From positions 8,382,962 through 8,446,961 of the forward strand of contig NC_134034.1 of NCBI RefSeq assembly GCF_964204645.1: a stretch of DNA of 64,000 nt. Reading direction: 5' to 3'. This document shows, piece after piece, positions 1-61,334 of the stretch. The number at the start of each line of letters is the position of its first letter. The stretch's first letter is position 1. The position numbers and the translations under genes were made by a program. This DNA comes from Tubulanus polymorphus (taxonomy: Eukaryota > Animalia > Nemertea). Below the pieces are notes generated by a model. It made no database searches and had not been told where the DNA came from. It saw nothing but the letters and a program-made list of their open reading frames with translations.

Positions 1-165
1 CTTCGCGGAGATTCCCGTGTCGGGGTGAACTTGCTTCAACACCTTGTAAATGTAGATGCTGTAGCTTTCCTTTCTTCTCTTCCTCCTTTTCTTGTCACCG
101 GTGTGAGCGGCTTTAGCCTTGGTGGCTGCCTTCTTGGCACCTTTGCTTGAAACTTTCGGCGGCAT
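1..165 (-). CDS. H2B: Histone H2B, 5' part (runs off window); promoter interrupted by a LINE
   Basis: Identical to 18591-18755; ATG at 165-163. Confidence 0.95.
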
Positions 166-204
166 GACGACTGTGCGTTAGCGAATGCGAAATAACACCG
201 GCGC

Positions 205-2626
205 AGCAGCAGCAGCAGCAGCAGATAGAAAAAGACAAACGCGCGGAGCGCGTTTTTAATGCTCGAGAGTGGTGGCCACTCTCCTACATTCAGGACGCGT
301 AGGTGCATGATTATTTGCTTGATATGATGATAGGTATATGAGTTGAACTATTATGAGATGAACTAAGGGGGATGTGGGTGGTGTGATAATTGTGTGAGTG
401 TGAAGGTACTGGTGGAAGGATTCAAACAAAGGTACATACAGAACGGACAGTTTTTATTATTTAGGCGTTTTTGTTTGGTTCGGTCCTTATCAGGAGTTTG
501 TTAGTGATTAATTATAATATTTTTTTTTTTTTTTTTTTTTTTTTCTATAAATAGTGATTAATATAATACGTATATATCACAAGAGTCTATGATATAATAT
601 ATGGTAGATATATATGTATATAATATGATACACAAAAATAGTGATTTTCCTCCGTTAAGGGGAGTCGCGATATAGTTAGAATACTTTGTCAATTACTATA
701 TACAAAACTTATAATTTCTTAGATATGATAATAAAGTATATAGTTATACTGCATATAGTTCGGTTCACGTGACGTGTTGTGTAAGGAGTAGCGACCTAGA
801 TACGGGCTACCTATATAGTTCTTGTAACACAAAGAAATCTTCCATTCAATTCTCCGACTACGCGGGTGTCGGTTCGTAGTAGAGTACACGCTATAGAGTT
901 ATAGAATTGACTTAAACGCTTCCACGATGTCTGAAGACGGCCATGGACTCGAAATATCGTAAAAGACACTCCTTAGTATCGGGTTATTTCGGTTGGAATT
1001 TAGGTAATTTTTCGTTAAGAGTTTAAAGCGCTGTTCCACAGTTTCTATTCGAGCTTGTTTATGTAGGTCTGCCGTTCTTGTATGGCGCGGTTGGCCTAGA
1101 ATGATTCGTAAGCATTTATTTTGGTGTATTTGAAGGCGGTCTAACTGACTACATGGGCAAGTTACCAGTATCGGAGCTCCGTATTCATAGATTGATCGAA
1201 TGAGTAATTTAAAAGCAGTGAGTATGTATTCCATTTTTACGCGGTTTCGTTTCAAAATAGCTAGTATTCCAGTTCTTTTATTTGCCTTAATTAATCTCTC
1301 TGTTATTTCCAGATTCCAGCGTAAATTAGACGAAAAAGTAATTCCGAGGAATTTGGTAGAATTTGATAGTGGTATTTGTTGGCCGTGAACAGTGTGCTCA
1401 GTGTATGGGTCGGTATTTATTAGGCGACTAAAGTGTATACTAACACATTTAAGCGCGTTTACTTTTAGCCTCCACATGTCACTCCATTGAGTTAGTTTGT
1501 CTATCGATTTTTGATGGAGATTTTCGATTGTTTTAGTTTTTACATTGTGCGTGTTCCATAGACTCATATCGTCTGCGAACAATGACGATTGACTATAATG
1601 ACTAGCTTTAATTGTATCCGAGGGAAAATCGTTTATATAGATGATGAAAAGTGTCGGCGAGAAAATCCCTCCTTGAGGGACTCCAGCGTTTATTTGCCTT
1701 GGCTGGCTAATACACCCTTCATTAGCGACTTTAAAAGTTCGACCCTGTAGATAGTTTTTAAGTAAGAGCTTAAAGTTGGTTGGAATAGATAAATGATTAA
1801 TTTTGTAGATAATTCCGTCGTGCCAAAGTTTATCGAACGCTTTCTCTAGGTCGAAAAATGTAGCACGCGTGCATTTCCGACGTTTTAGGCCTTTAGCGAT
1901 ATCATGAGACATTTTTAATATTTGATCTATGGTCGAATGTCCTTTTCGAAAACCAGCTTGTATTTCGGTAAAGAAGTTGGTATTTTCTAAGTAATCTGTT
2001 AATTTATTGTTCATGATTTTTTCGAAAATTTTGCCGATCGAGTTGGTTAAACTGATAGGACGCAAATTTTTGCAAAGTGTAGCATCTTTGCCGGCTTTTG
2101 GAATCATAGTAATTTTCGCAGACTTCCAGAATGATATATAGTAGCCATTTCTTTGGCAGTAGTTAAAAATGTGACATAGGTGGGTTAAAAATATCGAAGG
2201 ACAATTTTTAATAATCGCGTTCGTGATTCTATTTTCTCCGGGTGCTTTATTAAGTTTCAACCGTTTGATATAGCGTTTTATGTCTAGTTCAGTAATTGTT
2301 TCGTTTAGTATATGACCCGTGTCTTCTTCAGTATTTTCGTATACGAAGTTTCTATTGGATTCTTCTACGAAACGTTTATGTTGATCGCTGAAGTTTGGAT
2401 CAGTAGGCGTTTGAAAAACGTCGAATAAAAAGTCGGCGTATAGTTCGACGATATCTTTATCGTTACTCGCGGTTCGATCGTTATAAGCTAAATTCGAAAT
2501 AATGTTTTTTTTATCAACGTTACCGTTAATGTTTTTAATACCTCGCCAGAATTTACTCGAGTTCGGATTCGATGTATTTATGTCATCTAGTAGTTTTTTA
2601 GTCTTGTTATTTTTGTGGTCACGCAT
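205..2626 (-). mobile_element. 5'-truncated I/Jockey-group non-LTR retrotransposon (copy 1) inserted in the H2B core promoter
   Basis: The empty site ccggcgc-gca-acgcgccaacc (18788-18808) is split: left part ends at 204, right part resumes at 2627. Contains an RT ORF, a 3' UTR with internal poly(A) (T-run 520-544) and a (CTG)n tail at 205-224. No TSD; ~3 bp of target deleted. Confidence 0.95.
899..2626 (-). CDS. LINE ORF2, reverse-transcriptase portion (endonuclease lost to 5' truncation); frame uninterrupted
   Basis: Motifs KAPG, RPISL, QAGFR, DLEKAFD, GVPQG, LFADD, KFLGI; C-terminal QNKCLRIILG; no RNase H visible. Confidence 0.93.
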   Translation of the reverse strand: MRDHKNNKTKKLLDDINTSNPNSSKFWRGIKNINGNVDKKNIISNLAYNDRTASNDKDIVELYADFLFDVFQTPTDPNFSDQHKRFVEESNRNFVYENTEEDTGHILNETITELDIKRYIKRLKLNKAPGENRITNAIIKNCPSIFLTHLCHIFNYCQRNGYYISFWKSAKITMIPKAGKDATLCKNLRPISLTNSIGKIFEKIMNNKLTDYLENTNFFTEIQAGFRKGHSTIDQILKMSHDIAKGLKRRKCTRATFFDLEKAFDKLWHDGIIYKINHLSIPTNFKLLLKNYLQGRTFKVANEGCISQPRQINAGVPQGGIFSPTLFIIYINDFPSDTIKASHYSQSSLFADDMSLWNTHNVKTKTIENLHQKSIDKLTQWSDMWRLKVNALKCVSIHFSRLINTDPYTEHTVHGQQIPLSNSTKFLGITFSSNLRWNLEITERLIKANKRTGILAILKRNRVKMEYILTAFKLLIRSIYEYGAPILVTCPCSQLDRLQIHQNKCLRIILGQPRHTRTADLHKQARIETVEQRFKLLTKNYLNSNRNNPILRSVFYDISSPWPSSDIVEAFKSIL

Positions 2627-2815
2627 ACGCGCCAACCGTATTTATGTGAGCGCGCCGGCTCCCGTCGAGCGACCAATCAGCGCATCTGTTGATCGCCTGG
2701 CACTCGGCGCCGAGTATAAGTTCGTTCAGGCGCGCCGCGTACGCGAACGTTCACACGCACTGTTTCATTCGTTGTCAACGTCGTCGTATCGTCAAATTTG
2801 ATATCACCGATCAAC

Positions 2816-3190
2816 ATGTCTGGCCGAGGTAAAGGAGGAAAAGCGAAAGGCAAGGCCAAGAGCCGCTCGTCCCGCGCAGGGTTGCAGTTCCCGGTCGGAA
2901 GGATCCATCGTCTTCTCCGCAAAGGAAACTACGCCGAACGTATCGGAGCCGGAGCGCCGGTGTACCTAGCCGCCGTCATGGAATACTTGGCCGCCGAAGT
3001 GTTGGAGTTGGCCGGCAACGCCGCCCGCGACAACAAGAAGTCGAGAATCATCCCGCGACATCTGCAGTTGGCCATCCGCAACGACGAAGAGTTGAACAAG
3101 CTGCTTTCCGGTGTCACCATCGCCCAAGGCGGTGTACTGCCCAACATCCAGGCCGTGCTTCTGCCGAAAAAGTCCGCCAAGTCCAAGTAG
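2816..3190 (+). CDS. H2A: Histone H2A
   Basis: MSGRGKGGK...[14 protein letters not shown]...LLPKK; true ATG at 2816. Confidence 0.99.
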
Positions 3191-7152: not shown

Positions 7153-7284
7153 GCGCATCGGCGCTCGGGTCGGGCTATCATTCGTACATTCGACTCGTCG
7201 TTGTGACACGGAGCGCGGTTTCTATCAACTCTACTCAATAATCATCGATTAATCATGTCTGGCCGAGGCAAGGGCGGTAAAGGA

Positions 7285-13479
<6,195 letters not shown>

Positions 13480-13539
13480 TAAGCAGCTCAGCCCAGCGCG
13501 CAGCGGTCGCGGCCGCGGCGCCTGAGAAAACAACAACAC

Positions 13540-13617
13540 GGTCCTTATCAGGACCACTTCAACTTCCCAGAAAGAGCCAGTGGTAGTGCGCTGACCCGGT
13601 GCCTCGCTTTTTGCTTC
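13540..13617 (+). terminator. H4 3' processing signal (also at 23795-23872, 34060-34137, 44316-44393)
   Basis: GGTCCT-TATC-AGGACC, CCCAGAAAGAGCC, GCCTCGCTTTTTGCTTC. Confidence 0.92.
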
Positions 13618-14197
13618 ACACCCTCGCCCATATGTTATTAACGTAACGTGCCCTTGTTGTCGGTGTATGTCGGACACGATGGCTAAACGGTCCGAATTAA
13701 TTTCGAGGGATTAATCACGCGTACATCATACGTACGTACATACACATACACATACACACACACATAGGTACACGGATAATAGTAATTTTAATGTTGATTG
13801 ATAAATACGTAATTGCGTTTGTTTTCGGTGTTTTGTTGAAGTTTTTTTTCGGCCCCCGCTTTTCGCGGGTGCGATCGATTGATCGTTAATGACTTTGATT
13901 TTGGGTCGGGCGATGAAAAAAAGCCAGTGCAGAAGGAATTGTAGTACGCATGTATGGTTTCGCAAACACGAGTACTTCTGAATATATAGGACATCATTCG
14001 GGGTATTTTACATATCGAAGCACTTTACTTTCTATAGGCGATTGAAATTAAAAATCGAATCAGTTATTTAGGGCCTATGCGAGGGGAAAACACACGCCGG
14101 GCGATTAGATTCGAGCTGGACAATTGAAAGTTGGCGCGCATAAATGAATATAGGCCTACAGTACGTACACACGGTACCTCAACTCGGTCTTAATACG

Positions 14198-15102
14198 TGC
14201 CGCCGCCGCCGCCGCCGCCGCCGGTAGAAGGAACCATCGTTTTTATATCCGTTCTTTTTTTGTAACGCGTCTGGCGCTGTATTGATTGTCACCATCGAAA
14301 AACGACTAAGCTTCGTCGTCAACCGACCGATTTGGGTCGTCGTCCGAGATAAAATAAGAAAGAATCCGATCCATTGCACGAAGTATGTATCGTAGACCTA
14401 TGGACCTATAGCTAACGATAGTGCAGTGGTCTCTTTAGTTTCTCTTGTAATGTAATCGCGCGCGACGGCGAGCCGAGTCTCATTTCGTCGTAAATGGCGA
14501 TGGCATTATTTTATGTAATTCTATGTAAACGGCCTTATTTCTATGTAGCTAGCTGCCTGCCTGCCGCGGCTTATTGCGGCTCGGGGGTGGGTGTGGTTAC
14601 TGCGAGGCCGGCCGGTCGCACGAACGACTCGGATCTGCTGCGTGCAGTACGCTTTGATCGTGATTTTTCGAGATCAGCTTTGAAGCTAATAGAACTTCAT
14701 CGTCTCCGTGTATGTATATATATATATATATATATATGTATACGGGATTTTTCCGATTACATGCTTTCCATTAATTCGATCGCTCGCGCCGCCGCGTGTC
14801 TGCTCTGGGGAGTGTGGAATGACCTATCTTTTCTCGGAGAGAAAAATATACGTCAAACCATGGCCACAGCTAGCTAAATGATCGATAAGGCCTAAATACC
14901 TAACGCACTTTTTTCAACGGCGATGATGGCATTGATTTATAAAACACCGGCCAGCTTCAAAAATGTAATTGACAATAGAGATAAACTAGAGTGGCCAATG
15001 ACAACGTAATGATGAAACCATATTCCGCAACGTTGTTGCCGGCGGCCCCCGCCGTTTTGTTAAGTTACTTCATGCGAATTGTTCGGCGCGCCGATGACGA
15101 TT

Positions 15103-15145
<43 letters not shown>

Positions 15146-15150
15146 TGATG
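14198..15150. repeat. Length-variable microsatellites (GCC)n, (TA)n and (GAC)n in the H4-H3 spacer
   Basis: (GCC)n near 14198, (TA)n near 14715, (GAC)n near 15108. Copy number differs between units and accounts for the small length differences among the first three H4-H3 spacers. Confidence 0.9.
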
Positions 15151-16122
15151 TATATAGGTTCATCCGTATTTTACGCCGCCGTTTTTAAACACCATACATA
15201 TTCATTCGTGTGCATGGTTGGGATGCGCGCGTTTAATCGCATTTCATCGATCCTGTCTGCATCGCGCGCGGCGGATAGATTTTTGTTCGTTTGTCAACAA
15301 CTCTGATTACAAACGTTCATACCGTGTCAACAAGAGTTTTCAGTTAGGCCTACAACAACGTACGCGTACGTGTGCAAATTTCGTTTCTCGCATTTATTAA
15401 TGAGCAGTAATTGACTATACGACACGACGCCGCAGTTGTACGTCGATTAGTCGCGCGTCGAATATTATGAGAAAAAAACAATTCGAAGTTTTGAACATTT
15501 TTGTCGCCCCTCTCTTTTTTAATTCATTTGTTTATTTCCTGAATATATGATATATAAACTGATGCAAAATAACAGCAGGGTAACACGCATTTTCCGACAC
15601 ATATCAGGTAGGTCCATTTAGCGTGGAAGTTAAGCAACGGTGGCCTGCCTGTCTGACTTGGGTACCTTATTAGGTTTTTGCCTTCAACGCTATCCGATAT
15701 TGACACTGCTACAATACATGCGATTTTACTGATTGCTTTCGAATTAATAAACCTATATTCATTTATTTATTTATTCGCTTATTTACTTATTTATCCGTTG
15801 AGAAATAATTCCTCATAATTTAGGCCCTAATTCGCTTACGTAATTGCGACTGCGCGGGTTCAAATTGGCCGTTGATTAATTCAGTTTAGCGCGAAGATAT
15901 GTGATCATATCATCGTTTCTATGACAGACATCGGTGTGTAATAATAGGGATGGGAGATGATAGCCTATGGCATGGCATGTGAGCAAAAAACGATCACGGA
16001 TATCGGCGTACATCGCTGTGGTGAGGGAAGGTAGTGTATTTATTTACATCGAACGAAACGCGTCGATCGCGGCCGCCGGCTGCTCCCGGCGCTTCACTTC
16101 CTTTATTCAAATAGCCGGCCGA

Positions 16123-16187
16123 CCAATCGGCGCCCGACTATGCGAGCCAATCGCGTTCGCGCAGCGCGCCGACCGAGCGTCGATAAA
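16123..16187 (+). promoter_or_regulatory. H3 promoter: two CCAAT boxes and a GATAAA TATA variant
   Basis: CCAAT at 16123 and 16147; GATAAA at 16182, 75 bp before the ATG. Confidence 0.6.
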
Positions 16188-16244
16188 CCGGCCGGCGACA
16201 CTATAGTCGTACTATTGTAACGTTACATCGTTCGCTCTAGTTGA

Positions 16245-16667
<423 letters not shown>

Positions 16668-16713
16668 GTCGGACGACTATACGCGTCGTCGCATAATTGT
16701 AGACAACACTTAC

Positions 16714-16787
16714 GGTCCTTCTCAGGACCACTTAAAACTCCCAGAAAGAGCCGGTGTGTTTTGCCTGCCTCGCCTCGCTTTTGCTTC
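16714..16787 (+). terminator. H3 3' processing signal (also at 26979-27052, 37235-37308, 47480-47553)
   Basis: GGTCCT-TCTC-AGGACC, CCCAGAAAGAGCC, GCCTCGCTTTTGCTTC. Confidence 0.92.
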
Positions 16788-18259
16788 CCCTCGGTTCCTC
16801 TTGCATTGTTGAGAAATTGGCGACAAGAAAAAACAAAAACAAAAATCAATCACTCGCCAATGCAATAATGCTACGTATTTATTAGGATCGCGTCGGTTGT
16901 CGTGCCTGTGCGCTGTGCGGGCCTCCGTTTAACAATATTTATACTCGGCCCGTTGTATGTAGTAGGTACGTGGTGATCGTTTGTATTACTAGAAAACGCG
17001 AACGTGTTTCGCTTCTTTTTTTGTTGGTCCGGCCGCCGATTGTAATCGATTATTATTCTTCGCTGCATTTGGCGCACGAAACAAGACGCCTCGGGTGAAC
17101 CCGACGTCAAACCTACGTTCGGTCGGTTTTGCCGTGCCGCGACTATTTCGACGTCGGTTCGCGCAAAAACGATCCATCTTTTTCCCCGGCTTGCTGTCTC
17201 GCTGTATTATATACGATCTGTTCTGGCAGAATAAATGATACGGAATGGTGAAATTCAGAGCGCCCAAAACTATGCGTCGACTGATAAATCGATACAAAAC
17301 TCAACATATAGAATTCCTTCGCCATATACGAGCCGAAGCATCAATCGCCGGTTTTAACCGCACTGAATCAATCCTCTTGAGGAAACTGCATTCGTGTTGG
17401 TTTGTTTTAAGTTTTTCAGTCGTAAGTTTTTATCTTCCGCTTTTAATTGTCTAGCGACAAAAGTTTCGAGGAGTCGGCATTACTAGAAATCTTACGTCGG
17501 TTATCCCAGTTTTGAGCGTCGTATCGGCCCCCCTCGGTCGCCTAAGACGACAGACAGGCTGCGTGCGTGCTGCGTAATCAGGATTATTAGGGGGTGTCTG
17601 TCTGGTGGTCGTGCCACAAATTCCCAAGGCCATTTGTTTCCGAGGTTGTAGGCGTTCAAATTGCCATTCTCATTTCGATCCGAGTATAATATTATACGAT
17701 GCATAATATCAGAAGACAATTTGTTGCCGTTTCAAAGTTTGGCCCGAGATTTTATCATTCGACATTTCACCGTTCATACCAACGGGTATCGGCCTAGTGC
17801 GCCGCGTACAAACATGTTTGTGGTTGACATTTTTTTCTCGGCAGTTTAATAATGCATTTCATAAAATTTCAATTGCATTTCCTCGAAAATTGATATATAC
17901 GCACACAGAGATTCGCGCTTGTTGCTCTCTGCTCCTCAGTCGGTTAGTTATAGCGCGCTATTTAATAATTACAGCGCGTCACATTCTATGTAATCTGATA
18001 TGTATTGTTCTTCAACGGGACTCGCATGTTTCGTGTGTAGGCGCGCGTATTTCTTTCAGTCATTTTTTTCAAGTAACGAAGACAACGACCCGGACAAAAT
18101 CAAGAAGAAACCCGTCAGTCACAAAATCCACAAAACAAATAAATAAACCAACAAAAACGAAACAAAAAATCAACGCGTACTACATACATATATAGACAAT
18201 AATTACGTACGACGAGTCGAGTCGAGTCCTCGGTCGGTACGGTACGCAGGGTAAAAGGC

Positions 18260-18333
18260 GAAGCAAAGCGAGGCGACGGGAAAGCGCAAAAACTGGCCCT
18301 TTCTGGGAATTTGAAGTGGTCCTGATAAGGACC
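18260..18333 (-). terminator. H2B 3' processing signal (also at 28525-28598, 38781-38854, 49016-49089)
   Basis: Minus strand: GGTCCT-TATC-AGGACC, CCCAGAAAGGGCC, GCCTCGCTTTGCTTC. Confidence 0.92.
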
Positions 18334-18383
18334 GTTGGTTGATGCCCGATGGCGTAGGTACACACGCGCGCACGTAGCGCCGT

Positions 18384-18755
18384 TTACTTCGAACCGGTGT
18401 ACTTGGTGACGGCCTTCGTACCCTCGCTGACGGCGTGCTTGGCCAGCTCTCCCGGCAACAGCAGTCTGACGGCGGTCTGGATTTCCCGACTGGTGATGGT
18501 CGATCGCTTGTTGTAGTGCGTCAGGCGTGACGCCTCGGCGGCGATCCTCTCGAAGATATCGTTGACGAAGCTGTTCATGATGCTCATGGCCTTCGCGGAG
18601 ATTCCCGTGTCGGGGTGAACTTGCTTCAACACCTTGTAAATGTAGATGCTGTAGCTTTCCTTTCTTCTCTTCCTCCTTTTCTTGTCACCGGTGTGAGCGG
18701 CTTTAGCCTTGGTGGCTGCCTTCTTGGCACCTTTGCTTGAAACTTTCGGCGGCAT
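18384..18755 (-). CDS. H2B: Histone H2B
   Basis: [23 protein letters not shown]...[14 protein letters not shown]. Confidence 0.99.
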
Positions 18756-18986
18756 GACGACTGTGCGTTAGCGAATGCGAAATAACACCGGCGCGCAACG
18801 CGCCAACCGTATTTATGTGAGCGCGCCGGCTCCCGTCGAGCGACCAATCAGCGCATCTGTTGATCGCCTGGCACTCGGCGCCGAGTATAAGTTCGTTCAG
18901 GCGCGCCGCGTACGCGAACGTTCACACGCACTGTTTCATTCGTTGTCAACGTCGTCGTATCGTCAAATTTGATATCACCGATCAAC
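18756..18986. promoter_or_regulatory. 231 bp bidirectional H2B/H2A promoter (empty LINE target site)
   Basis: Minus-strand CATAAATA at 18810-18817, CCAAT at 18844, plus-strand TATAAG at 18886; palindrome GGCGCG-CAA-CGCGCC at 18790-18804. Confidence 0.8.
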
Positions 18987-19361
18987 ATGTCTGGCCGAGG
19001 TAAAGGAGGAAAAGCGAAAGGCAAGGCCAAGAGCCGCTCGTCCCGCGCAGGGTTGCAGTTCCCGGTCGGAAGGATCCATCGTCTTCTCCGCAAAGGAAAC
19101 TACGCCGAACGTATCGGAGCCGGAGCGCCGGTGTACCTAGCCGCCGTCATGGAATACTTGGCCGCCGAAGTGTTGGAGTTGGCCGGCAACGCCGCCCGCG
19201 ACAACAAGAAGTCGAGAATCATCCCGCGACATCTGCAGTTGGCCATCCGCAACGACGAAGAGTTGAACAAGCTGCTTTCCGGTGTCACCATCGCCCAAGG
19301 CGGTGTACTGCCCAACATCCAGGCCGTGCTTCTGCCGAAAAAGTCCGCCAAGTCCAAGTAG
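18987..19361 (+). CDS. H2A: Histone H2A
   Basis: Same protein as 2816-3190. Confidence 0.99.
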
Positions 19362-22300
19362 ATCGCGTCCGTGTCCCGCGCGTCGCGCATCCAAGCAACG
19401 GTCCTTATCAGGACCACTTCAACTTCCCAGAAAGGGCCAGTACTGACCTCGCCTGCCTCGCTTATTGCTTCGGTGATCACGATGATATAATTTCGTTGTT
19501 GTTGTTGTTTGTTGTTGTTGTCGTTGTTGTTTTATCATCAGCGTGTACGGGGGGTATATACGTTATCAAGGCGTTGGCCCGCGTACGATCCCAGTTCCAA
19601 TTCTCATCGGCTTTCGCGGCGTCCACAATGAAAAACTGTGTGTGTTATGTACATTACATTTATTAGTAGGGCGACATTCGTCAGGCGTGTTTACATATGT
19701 ACCCGGTATTTATTTCTCTTCTATTCCCCCGACACCGACGACGGCAACAGCAAAAAGAAACGTGCAAAACAAGACAAACAAGCAATGCAGGGTTCAATAC
19801 ATGCAGCCCCTCAAATCCCCGAAGAACCCCTCAAATTCCAAAATTCGTTTGTTAGGGATGGAACAAACTCCCTCAAATTCATCTTAGTTTTAGTCGTCGC
19901 TCAAATTCAGAAAACCGCTGCATTGGCATTTTATACTGCATTGTCTTGGTAGCCTGGCTGGGTTAGTTAGAATCAATGGTAATAAGTGGGGGCTATAGGC
20001 CTCGTTATCATCCCCGTAAAGTGTCCAAACTAACTTTCTCAATTATTTTGGAAGGTTTATTCGATTGCGAAGAGTCATTTTGACACATTTATCCAGGAGT
20101 TCAGAAAAACGGGGCCCTACGTACTTGAGCTGAATGTCGATATGGCGAGAGTTATTCTTACAAAATGCCGAAATCGGCAATTTTTCAAGTTGGTTGCTTA
20201 AAGAAGGACTCAAATTTAAAAACAAACATTCGGTATTCGTCAAAATGTTCCGTTTGCGACGGAATGTTTTCCGGCAGCTTTTCGTCGAAACAATGCTCTT
20301 CAGTCGGGATTGGGCCCCGGCTATCCTAGACGAGTTCTTTCACCCAAAATCAAGTTGAACGGTTTAGGCCCTAATTAGTATATGGCATATAGTCGAATGT
20401 TGATAAGGTTATTCGATTCATTGGCGCCTAAATGCATTTCGCTAATTCTGATAAGTATTGTACTGGTACTGTGTGTTTTATGTATCGGTTAGGTTTTCGT
20501 CGCGAAATATGACCCTCAATTTGGCGGTCACACCCTGAAAAACCGCTCAAATGCCCGTCACATTTCATAGCGATTGTCCTGTAGGAACCCCGTGCAATAA
20601 CACCTTTCGCGTAGGACTATTTCCTTTCATAAAACACGATCATGCATCTTTTTGCGGCCCTGCAACGAAAGTCGTATAATATGCCTGCTTTCGAAATTAC
20701 GTATATCGACATCGTTTTTAGCACGATTGCCTCCACCCACATCGTACAGCTATTCAAGACGTGTACGACATCATCATCGGCAGTACCGTCCTATATACTA
20801 GAAAGTAGTTACGCGCATATTTATACATAATTTCTATTGTAGATGTAAATGCGGGATTAAATCAGAACTAAATTTAAAGCTGAGGTATTCAACGAGACTC
20901 CAGTAGACAGGAAACCGGCAAGGCAGCCATTTTTCTTTTCTATCAAAATGATTTAACCTGGTAGAAGTCATCTGCATCTATATTCTACTGTAACTCTTTC
21001 GGCAACCACATACAATGTCCTTGGACGATTTGTGGATAATTTGTCATGTTATTTTGTATGATTATGTATACAGAATGTCAGATCTATATATGGTTAAAAA
21101 AAAACAAACAACATCATCGGCACCAGTAGATTGTGTCAATCGCCGAGCGAGATCTCCAGGGCTAGTTTATTTAGTACACCGATTTAGTCCCTTTTTTCGT
21201 TGTGTGAATGATGGCGGGTTCGCATCGCACGCGCGCGGCACCGGTATATTGCGCGATTCCCGGCGTAACCGCGCCATCGTGGGACGCACCGACAATACGT
21301 GCATGCAGTGCGGATAGCTATTTATTCATTTATTTACTACAGGATAGCAAATAGCTCGAAACTTCTATCAAAAACTTTCTTTCATAAAACACGATCATGC
21401 ATCGTTTTGCGGCCCTGCAACGAAAGTCGTATATATGCCTTTCGAACTTACGTATCGACATCCTAACCCTAACCCCAACCCTAACAGCGAGTTAATGTAA
21501 ATCCATGCAATGATCTTAAAAAAAAATCACACACATTATACAATCAGCTATTATCTTAGAACATCCCAATGCTGTGAATGTCTACGCTTAGATTGATATC
21601 AGTTAATTGCAGACATGTTATGTGTGTGGTGGCGATTCGATGGTATTTTGAATAGAGAGTGCGGTTTTAAGGACGAGGACATCATTAATTTTGAGGACAT
21701 CGAGATTTTTGGAGTATAGTGCGTCGGTGTGTGAGCAGGTTAGCGGTAATAATCCCCTAGGTCAAAAAAGCCCATCGGTAAAAATCCCCAATACTTCCAA
21801 AAGTAGGTACAAATCCCCCTCTTTTTGAATGGAGTGTAACGTCAATTAATTTCATATTAATATATCATATATCGCCGTTGAACTCAATAAGGATATATCA
21901 TGACCAAACAAACTATATAGTATACACTATTTGCGCATTATAACATACTAAAAATTAACAGTAGTTCATTAGTACTAAATTCGCACTTAAAGTTAACGCG
22001 CGCAGCTTAATGAAAGGGTTCATTGCACATTTCAAATATATCACACTAGCATGAATCTTATGACATTTCATTTTGAAAGTTCATTACTTCTGATCATTCA
22101 TTCATGGCATCGCACAGCTGAAATATACCACGAGTTATCAAGCGTCCACAGTTCAAAACTAATCCAGTTCGAATTGTAAGATATATTGCATTTAAAAAGT
22201 TCATCATTGTCATTAGTTATTACAAGTTGTTTCCTTCTAAACAGTTTACTAAATAAGAATTTATCGACGGCTGTGCAAACATAATTCAGTCTCAATTGCG

Positions 22301-23377
22301 AATGAATACGCTGCAAAAGCACCATCTTGCTTTGAAATGTTCCTGAAAATCACCAAGTCGGCGTTTTACCTACTTTTGAATATTCGGGGATTTTTACCTA
22401 TAGGGTATTTTTTTCCTGGTTTTTGTTTTGTTTTGTTTTGTTTTACCTACAACCGGGTGAGGGCAGTGTGTGATTACAGTTGGTCGAATATGCAATTTTT
22501 GTCGGAAATGAGCTGAACATAGTACCATAAAAATCGAAATTTTTTGAAGTTTTATGTCTGAAAGTCTGGTATTGATTGGACTGCTAATTACTTAAATACT
22601 CTCTGTAATTGATTACTTAATATGGGTTTTCTTCCTTTTTTATTTTTGGCAAACCGTCGAATATCCATAAATATCCATATATGGGCATGTATATCCGTCG
22701 AATATGGAGAATGAATTGAATTATTACACAGCGAACCGTCGAATATGCGTCGAATATGGAACATTATTTATATGATTATTTTTGGTGAACCGTCGAATAT
22801 GCGTTGAATATGGTCACTCCATCTGAAATGGTTTTTCCGGACCCCGTCGAATACGGTGACCCCTTTTTTCAGTTCAAAAATGTTGGTAACTATCAGTGAT
22901 TTTCGGTATTAGCTTGTTTGATACGCTAATACAGTATCTAAATCAACTTATTGTGACTTAATATCCGAGATAAATGAATCTGATATCGGAAACGAGAGTG
23001 ACAAAAAAGTTCAAAATTTCAAATTGATTTTTCTCAGTTTCGATAAAAGTGCATATTCGACGGTTCGCCAGAAACCCAGCGAATTTCTCAAAGCACTACG
23101 GCATAGGAACGACACCGACAGGGATACGGTGGCCGAGTCGCGCGAAGCACTGCCGACATAGGCGACCTATGCAGCTTGTGCTTTGAATGACATAGAGAGC
23201 GTAGTGTCGGAGCGGCGGACCCTATGCAGCCTGTGCTTCGAACGGCATAGTACGCGTAATGCTTCGGCGATGTACGAGTGCATAGGAGGGCTATGCACGA
23301 CACTACATACGGCGTCGTATAAAGCGCATCGGCGCTCGGGTCGGGCTATCATTCGTACATTCGACTCGTCGTTGTGA

Positions 23378-23737
<360 letters not shown>

Positions 23738-29020: not shown

Positions 29021-29251
29021 GACGACTGTGCGTTAGCGAATGCGAAATAACACCGGCGCGCAACGCGCCAACCGTATTTATGTGAGCGCGCCGGCTCCCG
29101 TCGAGCGACCAATCAGCGCATCTGTTGATCGCCTGGCACTCGGCGCCGAGTATAAGTTCGTTCAGGCGCGCCGCGTACGCGAACGTTCACACGCACTGTT
29201 TCATTCGTTGTCAACGTCGTCGTATCGTCAAATTTGATATCACCGATCAAC

Positions 29252-39276: not shown

Positions 39277-39507
39277 GACGACTGTGCGTTAGCGAATGCG
39301 AAATAACACCGGCGCGCAACGCGCCAACCGTATTTATGTGAGCGCGCCGGCTCCCGTCGAGCGACCAATCAGCGCATCTGTTGATCGCCTGGCACTCGGC
39401 GCCGAGTATAAGTTCGTTCAGGCGCGCCGCGTACGCGAACGTTCACACGCACTGTTTCATTCGTTGTCAACGTCGTCGTATCGTCAAATTTGATATCACC
39501 GATCAAC

Positions 39508-49550: not shown

Positions 49551-50811
49551 AGCAGCAGCAGCAGATAAAAAAGACAAACGCGCAGAGCGCGTTTTTAATG
49601 CTCGAGAGTGGTGGCCACTCTCCTACATTCAGGACGCGTAGGTGCATTATTAATTGCTTGATATGATGATAGATATATGAATTGAACTATTATGAGATGA
49701 ACTAAGGGGGATGTGGGTGGTGTGATATTTGTGTGGATGTGAAGTTACTGGTGGAAGGATTCAAGCAAAGGTGCATACAGAACGGACAGTTATTACTGTT
49801 TAGGCGTTTTTATTTGGTTCGGTCCTTATCAGGAGTTTGTTAGTGATTAGTTATAACAGTTTTTTTTTTTTTTTTTTTTTTTTTTCTTTTTAATATATGT
49901 ATATATATAGTCTTTAAATTCAATTTAATGTTATGTACACAAAAATAGAAGTTTTCTAGTGATTTTCCTCCGTTAAGGGGAGTCGCGAATACTTTGTCTA
50001 TTACTATATACAAAGCTTATAATGTACATTTCTTAGATATGTTAATAAGAGTATATAGTTTTACTGCATATAGTTCGGTTCACGTGACGTGTTGTGTAAG
50101 GAGTAGCGACCTAGATACGGGCTACCTATATAGTTCGTGTAACACAAAGAAATCTTCCATTCAATTCTCCGACTACGCGGGTGTCGGTTCGTAGTAGAGT
50201 ACACGCTATAGAGTTATAGAATTGACTTAAACGCTTCCACGATGTCTGAAGACGGCCATGGACTCGAAATATCGTAAAAGACACTCCTTAGTATCGGGTT
50301 ATTTCGGTTGGAATTTAGGTAATTTTTCGTTAAGAGTTTAAAGCGCTGTTCGACAGTTTCTATTCGAGCTTGCTTATGTAGGTCTGCCGTTCTTGTATAG
50401 CGCGGTCGGCCTAGAATGATTCGTAAACATTTATTTTGGTGTATTTGAAGGCGGTCTAACTGACTACATGGGCAAGTTACCAGTATCGGAGCTCCGTATT
50501 CATAGATTGATCGAATGAGTAATTTAAAAGCAGTGAGTATGTATTCCATTTTTACGCGGTTTCGTTTCAAAATAGCTAGTATTCCAATTCTTTTATTTGC
50601 CTTAATTAATCTCTGTTATTTCCAGATTCCAGCGTAGATTAGACGAAAAAGTAATTCCGAGGAATTTGGTAGAATTTGATAGCGGTATTTGTTGGCCGTG
50701 AACAGTGTGCTCAGTGTATGGGTCGGTATTTGTTAGGCGACTAAAATGTATACTAACACATTTAAGCGCGTTTACTTTTAGCCTCCACATGTCACTCCAT
50801 TGGGTTAGTTT
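49551..50811 (-). mobile_element. I/Jockey-group LINE copy 2 (3' 1.26 kb), same insertion nucleotide as copy 1
   Basis: Junction acaccggcgc|agcagcag is identical to 204|205. Shorter (CTG)n tail; ORF2 C-terminus at 50214-50811 with a 2-bp deletion near 50610. Confidence 0.95.
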
Positions 50812-52360: not shown

Positions 52361-55126
52361 ATGGCTAAGTCTACTCTGAATATATGTTATTTAAACATAA
52401 ACGGCGTGAAACAAAAATTGCCAGAAGTAACTGAATTACTTTTGAATAAAAATATCGACATTCTTTTCGTAGCCGAAACTAAATGCAAAACGATAAATTT
52501 TAATCCGAAAAATTATAAGAAAATCCATAAGCGGAGGACAGGAAAATCCGGAGGGGGTTTAATGGCTCTATACAACCGTGACCTGTTTATCGAACAACTG
52601 ACTTTTAATTTTAACAGCGACTCAACTGAATATATAGCTTTATCGGTGAAAAATAACGATAACAGTACTTTCAATGTCATAGGGGTTTATTGCCCACCTG
52701 CGAAAATTCTCGAACCACAATTTGTAGATGTCATTGAACGATCGAATCAAAATTTTTTCATTTTGGGTGATTTGAACGCTAAACACCCGATACTCGGTAA
52801 CCGTACGCCTAATACAGCCGGAATTAATCTAACGAACATTATTAATACGCACGGTCTCGTTTCATTAAATACAAAAGACCATACCTATTATGATTACCGC
52901 GTGAGAGGATACACTGATATTCTAGATAGAGCGCTTTGTAGTTCGCTTTGTAGTTCGCACATATTCCCTAAAGTAAACTCTTTTCATGTTTGCGATAGCG
53001 ATCATCGATAGTGATCACCGACCAATTTTAATAAATATTTCTACGCGTCCGAAAGTCATCGAACGCGAACTATATACCGACTTACTGTCTACGAGAAATA
53101 TCGACTGGTCAAAATTCCACGACAACGTATCTGACAAGCTCTCAACGATCGATACAACAAATCTAACTACTAACGAGCAGGTGGAAAATACTTACAGCAA
53201 AATAGAATTAGAAATAATTAACGAAATTAAAAGACAAAATAGCATGGAAAATAATAAAAGATCGAAACGAGTTGACCGCTTACCTCGTAATATAGAATTA
53301 ATAATTAAACGACGACGTTATTTAAAACGAGAATACGTTAAAACGCGTCACACTTATTCAAAATCACAATATAATAGATTAACTCTTGAAATTAGAAAAC
53401 TTATGCGAGACCACAAAAATAACAAGACTAAAAAACTACTAGATGACATAAATACATCGAATCCGAACTCGAGTAAATTCTGGCGAGGTATTTAAAACAT
53501 TAACGGTAACGTTGATAAAATAAGTATTTCGAATTTAGCTTATAACGATCGAACCGCGAGTAACGATAAAGATATCGTCGAACTATACGCCGACTTTTTA
53601 TTCGACGTTTTTCAAACGCCTATTGATCCAAACTTCAGCGATCAACATAAACGTTTCGTAGAAGAATCCAATAGAAACTTCGTATACGAAAATACTGAAG
53701 AAGACACGGGTCATATATTAAACGAAACAATTACTGAACTAGACATAAAACGCTATATCAAACGGTTGATACTTAATAAAGCACCCGGAGAAAATAGAAT
53801 CACGAACGCGATTATTAAAAATTGTCCTCCGATATTTTTAACCCACCTATGTCACATTTTTAACTACTGCCAAAGAAATGGCTACTATATATCATTCTGG
53901 AAGTCTGCGAAAATTACTATGATTCCAAAAGCCGGCAAAGATGCTACACTTTGCAAAAATTTGCGTCCTATTAGTTTAACCAACTCGATCGGCAAAATTT
54001 TTGAAAAAATCATGAACAATAAATTAACAGATTACTTAGAAAAAACCAACTTCTTTACCGAAATACAAGCTGGTTTTCGAAAAGGACATTCGACCATAGA
54101 TCAAATATTAAAAATGTCTCATGATATCGCTAAAGGCCTAAAACGTCGGCAATGCACGCGTGCTACATTTTTCGACCTAGAGAAAGCGTTCGATAAACTT
54201 TGGCACGACGGAATTATCTACAAAATCAATCACTTATCTATCCCAAACAACTTTAAGCTCTTGTTAAAAAATTATCTACAGGGTCGAACTTTTAAAGTCG
54301 CAAACGAAGGATGTATCAGCCAGCCACGGCAAATAAACGCTGGAGTCCCTCAAGGAGGAATTTTCTCGCCGACACTTTTTATCATCTATATAAACGATTT
54401 TCCTTCAGATGTAATTAAAACTAGTCATTATAGTCAATCGTCATTGTTCGCAGACGATATGAGTCTATGGAACACGCACAACGTGAAAATTAAAACAATT
54501 GAAAATCTGCATCAAAAATCGATAGACAAACTAACCCAATGGAGTGACATATGGAGACTAAAAGTAAACGCGCTTAAATGTGTTAGCATACACTTCAGTC
54601 GCCAGATAAATTCCGACCCGTACACTGAGCACACTGTCCACGGCCAACAAATACCGCTATCAATTTCTACCAAATTCCTCGGAATTACCTTTTCGTCTAA
54701 TCTACGCTGGAATCTGGAAATAACAGAGAGATTAATTAGGCAAATAAAAGAATTGGAATATTAGCTATTTTGAAACGAAACAGCGTAAAAATGGAATACA
54801 TACTCACTGCTTTTAAATTACTCATTCGATCAATCTATGAATACGGAGCTCCGATACTGGTAACTTGCCCATGTAGTCAGTTAGACCGCCTTCAAATACA
54901 CCAAAATAAATGTTTACGAATTATTCTAGGCCGACCGCGCTATACAAGAACGGCAGACCTACATAAGCAAGCTCGAATAGAAACTGTCGAACAGCGCTTT
55001 AAACTCTTAACGAAAACGTACCTGAATTCCAACCGAAATAACCCGATACTAAGGAGTGTCTTTTACGATATTTCGAGTCCATGGCCGTCTTCAGATATCG
55101 TGGAAGCGTTTAAGTCAATTCTATAA
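52361..55126 (+). pseudogene. LINE ORF2 (AP endonuclease + RT), broken by frameshifts and a stop
   Basis: YLNINGV, VAETK, LGDLNAKH, SDHRP and RT motifs. 13-bp duplication near 52994, TAA at 53493, frameshifts near 53768 and 54740. Confidence 0.9.
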
Positions 55127-55640
55127 CTCTAAAGCGTGTACTCTACTACGAACCGACACCCGCGTAGTCGGAGAATTGAATGGAAGATTTCTTTTTGTTA
55201 CACGAACTATATAGGTAGCCCGTATCTAGGTCACTACTCCTTACACAACACGTCACGTGAACCGAACTATATGCAGTAGAACTATTTACTCTTCTTAACA
55301 TATCTAAGAAATGTACATTATAAGCTTTGTATATAGTAATTGACAAAGTATTCTAACTATATCGCGACTCCCCTTAACGGAGGAAAATCACTATTTTTGT
55401 GTATCATATTATATACATATATATTTACCATATATTATATCATAGACTCTTGTGATATATACGTATCATACTAATCACTATTTATAGAAATCTCGAAGTA
55501 CTCGTACTTTATTACAACTCCGCTTGACGGAAGAAAACTTCTATTTTTGTGTGTATAACATTAAATTGAATTTAAAAACTATATATAAACATATATTTAA
55601 AAAAAAAAAAAAGAAAAAACTATTATAACTAATCACTAAC

Positions 55641-58535
55641 CATTTTTTAATTCATCATAAAATTGTTCTTTTAATAATTCAGTTATGTTAAAATCATTAT
55701 GATTTTTATAGAAAGAATATGGAATTGCTCCTTCATATCTCATTAATTGAAAATCATCATTATTTTGGTAGTGTTGTTTTAATATTTTTGATTCATCATC
55801 AACTAATGATTTTGATAAGTTATCTAATGAACTATTTAAAAATCTATATGAATCTATAAATCTTAAACACCAAAATTGGAATGATATATAATTCTCAGAT
55901 GTTTTAGCTAACATTCTAAATTTATAAGTTGGTATTTTATCTTTTGGTCTATTTGAATTTAATCTTTCTATTTCATTATTAATTTCTTCTATTTTATGGC
56001 ATAACTGCTTGATGAATAAATGTGCATCATATCCTGATAGATTATGAAATATAACTGGTACAAAGTTAATTTTCTTAGCTTGTAAGTTACAATTCTCATG
56101 TGCAGCGCCTCTAAACTTTCCATTCAAGTGATCATGGTCTCTTACTTTTTTATCTTTATAATTAAATATCTTTTCACAATAATAACATTTATCTGCAAAC
56201 TCAAATGCTTCTTTATCTTCTCCTGTCATTATAATTTCTATATTTGTATTCGATAATTTACTTAATCTTATTTCATATTCAATTAATAAGTCACAAAAAT
56301 GATTGATAACATTTTCATTTCTATAATCATAATATTCACTTTCAATTAGTTCTGGATAATCAGATTTTATATATAACCCGAAAGCTGCAGCTGATTGATG
56401 AATCTTTTTAATTGTATTTGTTTTTGGTGGTTCATCTGAAAAATCATTTTCATTAGAATTTTATTTCTTTCTTTTATAATATATTTCTTTCCTATCTTGA
56501 TCAGTTAGTTCTTTATTTAATGATTCAAAATCTCCATATATTACAAATGGAACTTTATTTTTGTAATCATATTTTTTGAATTCTAATATTTTATCTTTTT
56601 CATTTGGTAAAACTAATTTACAATAATCATGATTTTCACATAATTGTTTATGATTTAATAATGTACTTTCATTACTGAATCTATGTAAACATTTTCTACA
56701 AAGATATATTTCATGGTGATCATTTTCTGATTTAAAAAATAAATCGATTTTATTGAAATCGATAAAGGTTCTAATGTATAATGTTTTATGTTGTTACCTT
56801 TTGTATTTGGTAATTTGATTAAATCAAATACATTTATTCTTGAATTATTATCTCTTTCTATCTTTGGGATGTTTTTAATTCTAACAGGATACTTATCTAT
56901 CTTATAATTATTTTCAAATGGTTTATAATGAGTTACAATCTACAAATATTATAAGTTGCAGGATGTAAACAACTTATTATAGCCCATAGAAAACATTTAT
57001 CATCATCATTTTGTACATTTATTACAGCATTAGTTTTAAATGGTAGTTTAATATAACTCGATGCTTCAATATCTGGTTCTTTATAATATGATACATTATT
57101 TTCATCAATTGGTTTTGATTTAGTTAACTTATTATATTTTGTGTTATAAACATGTAAAGTCATAAATATCATTTCATCAAATATTAAACCAGATCCTTCA
57201 AAATATTTCTCTTCTATTTTAGTTTTTACTTCATTATAACATTTATCTAATTTATCATCTATATGTTGTTTAGATATAATGTTGTGAATGAGAATTTATA
57301 TTATATATTGGTTTATCTTCAGATTTTATAAACTTTACTTTAGAAGATATACTAATTTTAGGATATTCAACATCAGTAATTATTTTTATTATTTCTTTCA
57401 TATTTTCTAAATGTTTTTTATTTTCTTCTAATGTTTTTCCTTTATGAAATTTAAACTCGATAGCTGCTGGGCCAATATCACTTTTAAATGCTTCGGTTAT
57501 CTCTATATCTTTTTTATTATCCAATGAATTAATATATTTTCTTACATCTTCCATGTATGGTCTTTTATTTAATTTATTTTTTATGCTTTTAATTGTCTTC
57601 TGTTTCTTATCATTATCTTTATCAAAATAATCTTCACCTAAAATATCATTATTCTTATTTCTAATATGACTTTTAGATTTTAAATGTTCATTATAATATC
57701 TTTTATCACTGAATGATTGATTACATGTATCACATTTGTATGTTTCTTTTTCATTCTTTAATTCATCTAATTTAGTTTCTAATATATCATCTATATATTC
57801 TAGTTTCAATTTATTCTCTAAATGTGTTTTAGTTTTATTGTGTCTTGCTTTTTGGGATTTATCTATATTGATATTACATGTTGGACAGTAGTACTTATTT
57901 GCTTCGATTTTAATACTAAATTTTTTATTAAAATTGATTTTAGAAGTTCAATAATTTATATCATGTATTATTTCAATCACACTTTACTAACACTTTTAAT
58001 GTTTAAAAATCTAACTCACACAAATATGAATATTGAAATAATGTTGTAAATATATACTTTTATATTGAATAATCTGTCAATTTAAATGTTATTCATTTAC
58101 ATGAATATTTTAAGAGTAATAGGGGTAATGGGCTTTCAGGTTAAAGGTTGAATGGTCGAGTTCATTAAAAACAAATATTAAAAGTAATTTAAAACTATAA
58201 TATATTTTCATAACCGTGTGCATTTAAGTTGAATAATAGAATAATAATTATTATTAAAATATATTTGATTATATGAATTTGTGTATTGTAAATAAATCAA
58301 TTGGTCGCGGAGCGGAGCGGTAGCGAAGTGGAGCGACCAATTGATTTAATACAATATGCTTTTAAAATTTAAATTATTGATATCTTAAGAATATCTTGAG
58401 AATAAATATTTAGTTATAATATAAAATGCACACGGTTATGAAAATATATTATAGTTTTAAATTACTTTTAATATTTGTTTTTAATGAGCTCGACCGTTCG
58501 ACTTTTGATTTGAAAGCCCATTACCCCTATTACTC
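55641..58535 (-). mobile_element. Decayed Polinton/adintovirus-like PolB element (copy A), truncated at the LINE, with a terminal fold-back hairpin
   Basis: Fragments with a zinc finger, NVQNDDDKCFLWAI, VRDHDHLNGKFRGAAHENCN (endonuclease VII-like), FHNLSGYD and RFIDSYRFL; multiple frameshifts. Confidence 0.8.
58114..58535. repeat. ~420 bp imperfect palindrome
   Basis: Outer arms gagtaataggggtaatgggctttca...ccgtgtgcattt and their inverse; inner stem taaatcaattggtcgc/gcgaccaattgattta around a GC-rich loop at 58309-58332. Confidence 0.92.
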
Positions 58536-60845: not shown

Positions 60846-61186
60846 AGGATAGGCTTGTAACCTCTTCTAGCTAGGTGCTGATAAGTTCCCGCGATAGAAA
60901 TATCTTTTGTTTTTGATTAACTAAATCTGTTTTTAATCTATTAAATTATGTATATAGTGGTTTTAAAACTTATTGTCAATTCTCCTAACATCAGTTTGAC
61001 CGGTGCCATTCTACCAACAGGTAGTTTCTGTTCTGAGAAAACCTGTTCTTTCTATTGAAATAAACAACTGTCCTTGAAACGAGTACCGGAACAACGCGTC
61101 GTACTGGCCGTTTAGTGAGGTAATAAAGTGACGTAGAGAGAATCCGACAATTATAACGAAAAAGTCCGAAAATGTAACTTCGAGAT

Positions 61187-61307
61187 TGTAGTTTATTTCA
61201 ACGTTTCGACTTTATCCTAATAGTCATCTTCAGGAATACTGTATTCCTTGAGCTAGTGTAGTTTATTTAACGTTTCGACTATATCCTAATAGTCATCTTC
61301 AGGAATA
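61187..61307 (-). ncRNA. Two tandem minimal hammerhead-ribozyme-like motifs (Penelope/retrozyme type), probably degenerate
   Basis: Minus strand TATTC-CTGAAGA-T-GACT..AGTC-GAAA-CGTT at 61187-61238 and 61257-61307. Confidence 0.6.
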
Positions 61308-61334
61308 ATGAGATACTACAAAAATTATGAGATA

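Follow-up and report, generated by a model that had tools for sequence, protein, structure and literature searches.

Two independent insertions of a low-copy LINE in histone H2B promoters of Tubulanus polymorphus and its probable positioning relative to the TATA box

We analysed a 64,000 nt stretch of the genome of the ribbon worm Tubulanus polymorphus (the window; C10:8382962-8446961 on contig NC_134034.1; genome size 268 Mb), in which the histone genes form a tandem array with a unit of approximately 10,255 bp. The units of this array are 99.4-99.9% identical to one another, and the divergent H2A and H2B genes are separated by a spacer of approximately 230 bp. In two of these spacers a copy of a long interspersed nuclear element (LINE) separates the start of H2B from its TATA-like box and is oriented like H2B. 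The sense (CTG)n tail of the element meets the H2B leader 39 nt ahead of the H2B ATG. Altogether, the family has 12 3′ ends in the whole assembly, and the same 12 were found in a search with the 3′ untranslated region (UTR) and in a search with a conserved 3′-end 19-mer. They belong to the two histone copies (copy 1 and copy 2) and to ten further loci (L015-L024). The features around the histone insertions are listed below; ORF stands for open reading frame and RT for reverse transcriptase.

1-165, minus strand: 5′ part of the H2B coding sequence, with the ATG at 165-163; the window begins inside this gene, which is homologous to 18384-18755 (minus strand)
166-204, minus strand: H2B leader still joined to the gene, ending in the left palindrome arm (…ggcgc)
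205-2626, minus strand: LINE copy 1, 2,422 bp, 5′-truncated, 3′-UTR haplotype A, 99.1% identical to L015
205-224: tail of copy 1, (CTG)n, 20 nt; the plus strand reads AGC repeats
899-2626, minus strand: truncated ORF2 of copy 1 (RT and C-terminal region), Pfam RVT_1 with E=1e-37
2627-2815: remainder of the divergent H2A-H2B promoter, with the right palindrome arm, the H2B TATA-like box, CCAAT and the H2A TATAAG
2816-3190, plus strand: H2A coding sequence, untouched by the insertion
18790-18804, also 29055-29069 and 39311-39325: empty target GGCGCG-CAA-CGCGCC
49551-50811, minus strand: LINE copy 2, 1,261 bp, 5′-truncated, 3′-UTR haplotype B, 98.5-99% identical to L017/L020
49551-49564: tail of copy 2, 14 nt
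50812-~55641, plus strand: LINE copy 3, inverted, both ends truncated, with frameshifted ORF1/APE/RT, haplotype C, outside the histone DNA

The original prediction, made from the letters of the window, was that a LINE of the I/Jockey group had entered the same nucleotide of an H2B promoter palindrome twice, and its description of the two sites was confirmed. The junctions 204|205 (copy 1) and 49550|49551 (copy 2) both read acaccggcgc|agcagcag, the tails differ in length as described (20 and 14 nt), and the inverted repeat could be read in three empty units, where the target is split as ggcgc|gca|acgcgcc within a 6+3+6 palindrome. The empty form is also present in 374 reads of an independent whole-genome shotgun run. 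Loose ends of reads at 2627 show that longer LINE copies extend past 2626. Thus, the spacer resumes at 2627, and copy 1 replaces exactly 'gca' (18795-18797) without a target site duplication (TSD), as had been claimed. The H2B TATA-like box, ATAAATA on the minus strand at 2639-2645 (18810-18816 in the empty unit), lies on the far side of copy 1, so that this H2B gene is indeed cut off from it. The H2A side is intact, since 2622-7284 matches the empty units at 99.9%. The H2B-side flanks of copies 1 and 2, predicted to be nearly identical, show no difference in 204 nt and are 97.8% identical over 1.5 kb.

For copy 2, histone DNA is found on the H2B side only. The array assembly ends at this copy and the H2A half of the spacer is absent. 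The 5′ truncation of copy 2 abuts the inverted copy 3 head-to-head, and its 5′ junction with the spacer is therefore not examinable. The fusion of copies 2 and 3 (50811|50812) is present independently in a contig assembled from short reads of run X1 (loose end at 1498); it perhaps reflects a rearrangement or deletion tied to the insertion.

The assembly contains seven H2A-H2B spacers, all within the single array: five are empty, one is filled with copy 1, and one is the half-site with copy 2 at the right array edge. Read depth in an independent individual (Illumina run X5, ~7.2x coverage) amounts to ~500x for the spacer and ~50-60x for the LINE body. The spacer depth corresponds to ~70 histone units, compared to seven in the assembly. 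Thus, the array is either collapsed in the assembly or varies in copy number. The spacer depth was read at 2658-2815. The depth of the LINE body corresponds to ~7-8 bodies, and few LINE copies can therefore be hidden. In a read survey for further histone insertions, no additional spacer-joined truncation point was present among the loose ends listed, and the tail junction is masked as a repeat. With seven assembled or ~70 depth-estimated spacers in 268 Mb, two insertions at one nucleotide are far beyond chance. Each of them parts the host gene from its TATA box, which affects one or two of ~70 H2B genes.

The array evolves in concert, and a single old insertion could have been copied together with the histone unit, with the flanks homogenised while the inserts diverged; alternatively, the inserts could have been overwritten by ectopic conversion. 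The identity of the flanks over 204 nt and the similarity of the array units agree with such a history. The comparison of element and flank divergence, proposed earlier as a check, is ambiguous alone: at the end of ORF2 copies 1 and 2 diverge by 1.8%, close to the 2.2% of the 1.5-kb flank, and array flanks are homogenised. We therefore compared the copies with the dispersed members of the family. Four indel blocks distinguish the 3′-UTR haplotypes A, B and C. In haplotype A (copy 1, L015 and L019) a 6-nt block is missing and one member of a pair of related AT-rich blocks is kept; haplotype B (copy 2, L017 and L020) contains the 6-nt block, lacks a 10-nt block and has kept the other AT-rich block; haplotype C (copy 3 and L016) carries both AT-rich blocks. 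In the distal 3′ UTR (297 nt) copies 1 and 2 differ at 18 positions, compared to three between copy 1 and L015 and five each between copy 2 and L017 or L020. At the end of ORF2 (~681-683 nt) the corresponding values are 12, four and five.

A maximum-likelihood tree groups copy 1 with L015 and L019 (support 100/98) and copy 2 with L017 and L020 (99/98). A tree in which copies 1 and 2 are forced into one clade is 61 log-likelihood units worse and is rejected by the approximately unbiased (AU) test (p=1.4e-4). L015, the nearest relative of copy 1, exceeds it in length and hence cannot be its descendant. The conversion variant would need replacement of the whole insert in both units. A single insertion is thus very unlikely. 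The two copies share their diagnostic indels and substitutions with different dispersed copies; the two histone insertions are therefore independent events. The independence that had been predicted is borne out by source lineages, structural haplotypes of the 3′ UTR and truncation points. Chimeric retrocopies generated by template switching were considered as well and rejected: at the histone sites the H2B flank runs for at least 1.5 kb in array context, and at L015, L016, L017, L018, L021 and L022 the TSDs enclose the LINE only.

Copies of the family span ~250 bp to ~6.0 kb (the full-length copies L016 and L019) with a common 3′ end and have TSDs of 9-15 bp, the hallmarks of target-primed reverse transcription. 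ORF2 is 917 aa long and encodes an APE followed by an RT domain (Pfam Exo_endo_phos_2 / Exo_endo_phos and RVT_1 in L019 ORF2 and in copy 3); the APE domain that had been read from position 52361 onward in copy 3 was recovered by Pfam, as was the RT. The family is therefore an APE-type non-LTR (long terminal repeat) retrotransposon. ORF1 of L019 shows three CCHC knuckles (CX2CX3-4HX4-6C) in the translation, which has no Pfam match. RNase H (PF00075), the criterion for the I clade, was not found in the 917-aa ORF2, and the C-terminal 144 aa contain neither RNase H nor a Cys motif. From this architecture (ORF1 knuckles, ORF2 with APE and RT, no RNase H), the Jockey/I-group label given earlier is reasonable, and the element appears Jockey-like, though its tail is a trinucleotide repeat. 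The closest database proteins to ORF2 are 26-31% identical and likewise without RNase H, the best match lying on a short contig; the exact ORF2 sequence is absent from the public protein collections searched. Two of the ends belong to subfamilies: L023 is ~80% identical to copy 1, compared to 99% for L015, and L024 represents a divergent subfamily with a different tail.

Several further observations were made on the element. The copy on chromosome 8 has ~520 bp of unrelated sequence inserted in its 3′ UTR (L020:6955-7474). The antisense strand of the LINE 3′ UTR (482-495 and 49821-49834, plus strand) contains an exact 14-mer of the histone mRNA stem-loop of the species; this 14-mer occurs 18 times in the window, compared to none in shuffled sequences, and is kept in all LINE copies, divergent subfamilies included. 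A 5.5-kb contig of run X2, derived from a longer LINE copy, is without 132 and 91 nt (window 1001-1134 and 1221-1313). These gaps are bounded by GT..AG antisense to the LINE and may reflect a spliced antisense transcript or a deleted copy.

To explain the repeated hit, the original prediction proposed that the insertions are specific for the sequence or the structure of the palindrome. An endonuclease that recognises GGCGCG-CAA-CGCGCC or its cruciform would account for two insertions at one nucleotide inside it, and the 8-mer CGTTGCGC is common to the H2B site and the repeat beside L019/L022. The ten non-histone 3′ ends do not bear this out. Their target sequences are unrelated: a pogo-like transposon accounts for one, retroelement-like promoters for two and copies of two abundant short repeats for four; a further site is anonymous, and the last two (L020 and L024) could not be reconstructed. 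Targets could be rebuilt via the TSDs for L015 (14 bp), L016 (10-15 bp), L017 (12-14 bp), L018 (9-10 bp), L021 (13-14 bp) and L022 (10 bp), and for L019 via an uninterrupted inverted paralog 300 bp upstream of the element. None of these targets is palindromic at the junction. Altogether, the 12 3′ ends use at least five unrelated sequences, and not the one conserved target of a sequence-specific LINE. With 10 of 12 insertions in non-palindromic, unrelated sequence, with the shared 8-mer ~50 nt off the junction in L019/L022, and with cuts that are asymmetric within the palindrome, recognition of the palindrome is very unlikely.

The histone site is not the only one at which a nucleotide was used repeatedly. 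L015 and L023, which belong to different subfamilies, join the same nucleotide of their target family; L018 and L021 lie 3 nt apart, and L019 and L022 1-4 nt apart. The identified target units outside the histone array are the following.

L015 (L023 by homology): retroelement-like unit, in which a 519-aa ORF starts 9 nt past the junction and is followed by an ORF with weak RT similarity
L017: pogo/Tigger-like transposase unit
L018/L021 and L019/L022: two mutually related, very abundant short repeats

The possibility that the L015 flank is a tandem related LINE was rejected, since the ORF1 proteins show no similarity. The short repeats are conspicuous in themselves. The L019-type repeat (L019:8063-8190; inverted copy L019:1669-1790) has 931 candidates, many of them 100% identical and often arranged as head-to-head pairs. 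The window contains the L018/L021 type at 61133-61330 (minus strand) and not the L019/L022 type. Both carry their own TATA box, with a TCAGT initiator in the L019/L022 type and a TCATT variant in the L018/L021 type. Each also has a CUGAUGA…GAAAC core resembling a hammerhead, without an Rfam match; a Penelope-like or retrozyme-like nature is possible for both. The presence of flanking hammerhead ribozymes was considered and the idea dropped: CUGAUGA…GAAAC-like cores follow several tails, but no Rfam hammerhead was detected (none at E<=1 in the ten loci, none at E<=10 on a 211-nt stretch) and no stem I was visible by eye.

The targets share a promoter geometry. We measured how far the tail junction lies from the first T of the TATA box in the eight targets, among those of the 12 3′ ends, that could be reconstructed.

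H2B: 21 nt
L015: 21 nt
L016: 22 nt, with CCAAT just upstream
L017: 23 nt
L018: 23 nt
L019 paralog: 22 nt
L021: 25 nt
L022: 26 nt, or 23-26 as the CTG of the target itself merges with the tail

A TATA box is located upstream of the junction in all eight targets at 21-26 nt, and at 21-23 nt in six of them. Downstream, four of the eight contain a TCAGT initiator-like motif and two contain variants, TCAGC (L015) and TCATT (L021), with the A 6-12 nt past the junction; no TCAGT-like motif was scored downstream at H2B or L018. The LINE has the orientation of the downstream unit wherever this is known, that is at H2B, at the unit with the 519-aa ORF and at the pogo-like transposase; the two short-repeat families are counted among the co-oriented targets as well. 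The family thereby shows the geometry of position-specific retrotransposons of the TRE5-A/Ty3 type, a constant promoter distance and orientation across unrelated sequences. At every junction 1-4 nt are able to pair with the CUG-repeat tail. The TSDs of 9-15 bp usually take in the initiator, and the full-length L016 starts 5 nt past a TCAGT that belongs to its upstream TSD and is itself preceded by TATA and CCAAT, an arrangement that would suit transcription from the host promoter. A search of RNA runs recovered none with this stretch.

In 314 kb of background sequence, TATAWA or ATAAATA starts 20-26 nt upstream of a random position with a frequency of 0.016-0.018, so that 5-6 positives among the eight target families correspond to P ~1e-8 to 1e-9. 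The TATA motif and the 7-nt window were chosen after the data had been seen, and no reasonable correction for this choice abolishes the enrichment. TATA distance and orientation account for the repeated hit better than the palindrome. Random targets in the other copies, which would have spoken against the original prediction, are found as far as their sequences go, since these are unrelated, and are not found for TATA distance and orientation, which the targets have in common.

We conclude, with a probability of roughly 0.6, that this is a promoter-capturing, low-copy Jockey-like LINE that uses the TATA box as a ruler and was inserted twice independently in H2B core promoters. A number of points weigh against this. 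There are just 12 insertions in a single genome, and the motif and the distance window are post hoc. The target repeats of L018/L021 and L019/L022 are related to each other, and L021 and L022 at 25-26 nt are off the tight 21-23 nt mode. The targets of L020 and L024 were not reconstructed; the 5′ flank of L020 ends in TATATA and has no TSD, which may reflect a deletion of the target. The upstream sides of L023 and copy 2 were deduced from paralogs. Finally, no insertion is present at the TATA boxes of the H2A, H3 and H4 genes of this array, and the H2B promoters are multicopy (~70 by depth), which alone raises the odds of reuse.

The same geometry might arise without a ruler. A weakly specific endonuclease could favour nucleosome-free, active promoters, with tail microhomology setting the exact base and the TATA distance as a by-product. 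The 1-4 nt with pairing potential at all junctions are consistent with this, as are the targets themselves, which are promoters of multicopy, probably germline-active units, and the range of distances from 21 to 26 nt. Accessibility alone, however, predicts both orientations and a wider spread over a nucleosome-free region of 100-200 bp, whereas six of eight distances fall at 21-23 nt and the LINE invariably runs in the direction of the gene. We regard an open-promoter bias as rather unlikely. A second explanation is survivorship, in which insertion is random and only copies in redundant promoters, such as those of histone units and transposons, escape purifying selection. At least 10 of the 12 copies do lie in multicopy, damage-tolerant sequence. 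Selection, however, gives neither a fixed offset of 21-23 nt nor a constant orientation, nor reuse of the same nucleotide in tolerant targets that are kilobases in size, which makes survivorship very unlikely.

If the TATA box does serve as a ruler, the insertion might proceed as follows. The nick at the tail junction would come first, as in the standard model of target-primed reverse transcription. It would be placed on the template strand, ~21-23 nt (some two helical turns) past the first T of the TATA box, which corresponds approximately to position -10 of an RNA polymerase II (Pol II) core promoter and probably lies near the point where promoter DNA opens. At the H2B site the first nick would be 18794|18795 on the plus strand, the H2B template, and the second cut 18797|18798 on the minus strand. 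The 3′ end (…GC) of the nicked template strand could pair with the CUG-repeat RNA and prime reverse transcription, and the 1-4 nt paired in this way with the (CUG)n tail would set the exact base. The usual second-strand cut would lie 10-15 bp downstream and generate a TSD that duplicates the initiator; for copy 1, a cut 3 bp upstream instead would lead to the 'gca' deletion.

The ruler might be a tether to TBP, TFIID or the preinitiation complex (PIC), or a DNA deformation induced at the TATA box; direct reading of the TATA sequence by proteins of the element seems less likely. A full-length copy would come to lie immediately downstream of the host TATA box and of a duplicated initiator, so that the host promoter could drive the element, and the host gene would retain an initiator and lose its TATA box. 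Histone promoters are multicopy and fire in S phase. A link of integration to S phase could, speculatively, explain why two of the 12 insertions are in H2B. The full scheme, in which TBP or the PIC occupies the TATA box and the integration complex, counting off some two helical turns from there, nicks the template at approximately -10, inserts in gene orientation, captures the TATA box together with a copy of the initiator, and favours S-phase histone promoters as a Pol II counterpart of TRE5-A and Ty3, is put forward tentatively, as a possibility somewhat short of an even chance.

The remaining features of the window include a complete array unit (13186-23441), a second retrotransposon and DNA beyond the array.

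7285-13185, plus strand: unrelated poly(A) LINE with an ORF at 7418-10639 (APE, RT and zf-RVT) and a 14-bp TSD (7271-7284 / 13187-13200)
16257-16667, plus strand: H3, in array unit 13186-23441
18384-18755, minus strand: H2B, in the same unit, with a Pfam Histone match
18988-19361, plus strand: H2A, in the same unit; the ORF 18969-19361 matches Pfam Histone_H2A_C and Histone
23426-23737, plus strand: H4, following the H2A of this unit

At 55636-56229 (minus strand) an ORF matches Endonuclease_7 and an organellar/viral-type DNA polymerase B. From there the DNA is very AT-rich up to position 64000 and contains large inverted repeats (56087-58055 versus 64000-61949); judged by these features, the region looks like a Polinton/Maverick or a linear-plasmid or virus-like element.

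The target-specific LINEs listed in a review belong to early-branching, Tx1 and R1 clades, and each recognises one conserved sequence, in ribosomal RNA genes (rDNA), small nuclear RNA (snRNA) genes or microsatellites (PMC4640811). In our full-text searches, which covered part of the journals, no LINE was described as targeting TATA boxes or histone promoters. If the reading given here is true, LINEs would have a new principle of targeting, namely by position relative to the TATA box of Pol II core promoters. This would account for the expression, wherever it has landed, of an element that has no obvious promoter itself, and would show how histone arrays and other transposons turn into landing pads. 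It would also offer a natural system for studying how a retrotransposition complex docks on the Pol II initiation machinery.

Histone arrays and TATA boxes are visited by other retroelements. The poly(A) LINE at 7285-13185 parasitises the same array and even the same histone unit as copy 1; it differs in that it is unrelated, has a poly(A) tail and interrupts the H4 coding sequence, after codon 10. The Drosophila LTR elements 297 and 17.6 are reported to insert in TATA boxes, including one of histone H3, and are thus also retroelements tied to histone-gene TATA boxes. They enter the ATAT itself by integrase preference, whereas the ribbon worm LINE is found ~15 bp beyond the box and inserts by target-primed reverse transcription.

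Further targets of LINEs are tRNA genes, telomeres and spliced-leader genes, to which Dictyostelium adds a Pol III complex. The Dictyostelium LINEs TRE5-A and TRE3 integrate near tRNA genes via TFIIIB, which contains TBP, ~50 bp upstream or ~100 bp downstream. Like the ribbon worm element they are APE-type LINEs with multicopy targets and a fixed distance and orientation; their position is chosen relative to a transcription complex and not by a DNA sequence, as would be that of the ribbon worm element. Their targets are Pol III genes, whereas the ribbon worm LINE sits at Pol II TATA promoters between the TATA box and the start. Yeast Ty3 integrates 1-2 nt from Pol III start sites through TFIIIB, and resembles our element in the reuse, at the level of the nucleotide, of a site that is, or in our element would be, defined by an initiation complex; it is an LTR element with an integrase and Pol III targets. 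SLACS, CZAR and CRE in spliced-leader genes and R2 and R1 in rDNA are site-specific LINEs that borrow promoters. They too are located downstream of a host promoter, in gene orientation, in multicopy genes and with small deletions or short TSDs. Most of these elements use a restriction-like endonuclease or are members of the R1/Tx1 clades, and they have one conserved target, in contrast to the at least five unrelated target sequences of the ribbon worm LINE, which have the TATA offset alone in common. The nearest functional analogues would be the TFIIIB-guided TRE5-A and Ty3, together with the promoter-borrowing SLACS/CRE and R2.

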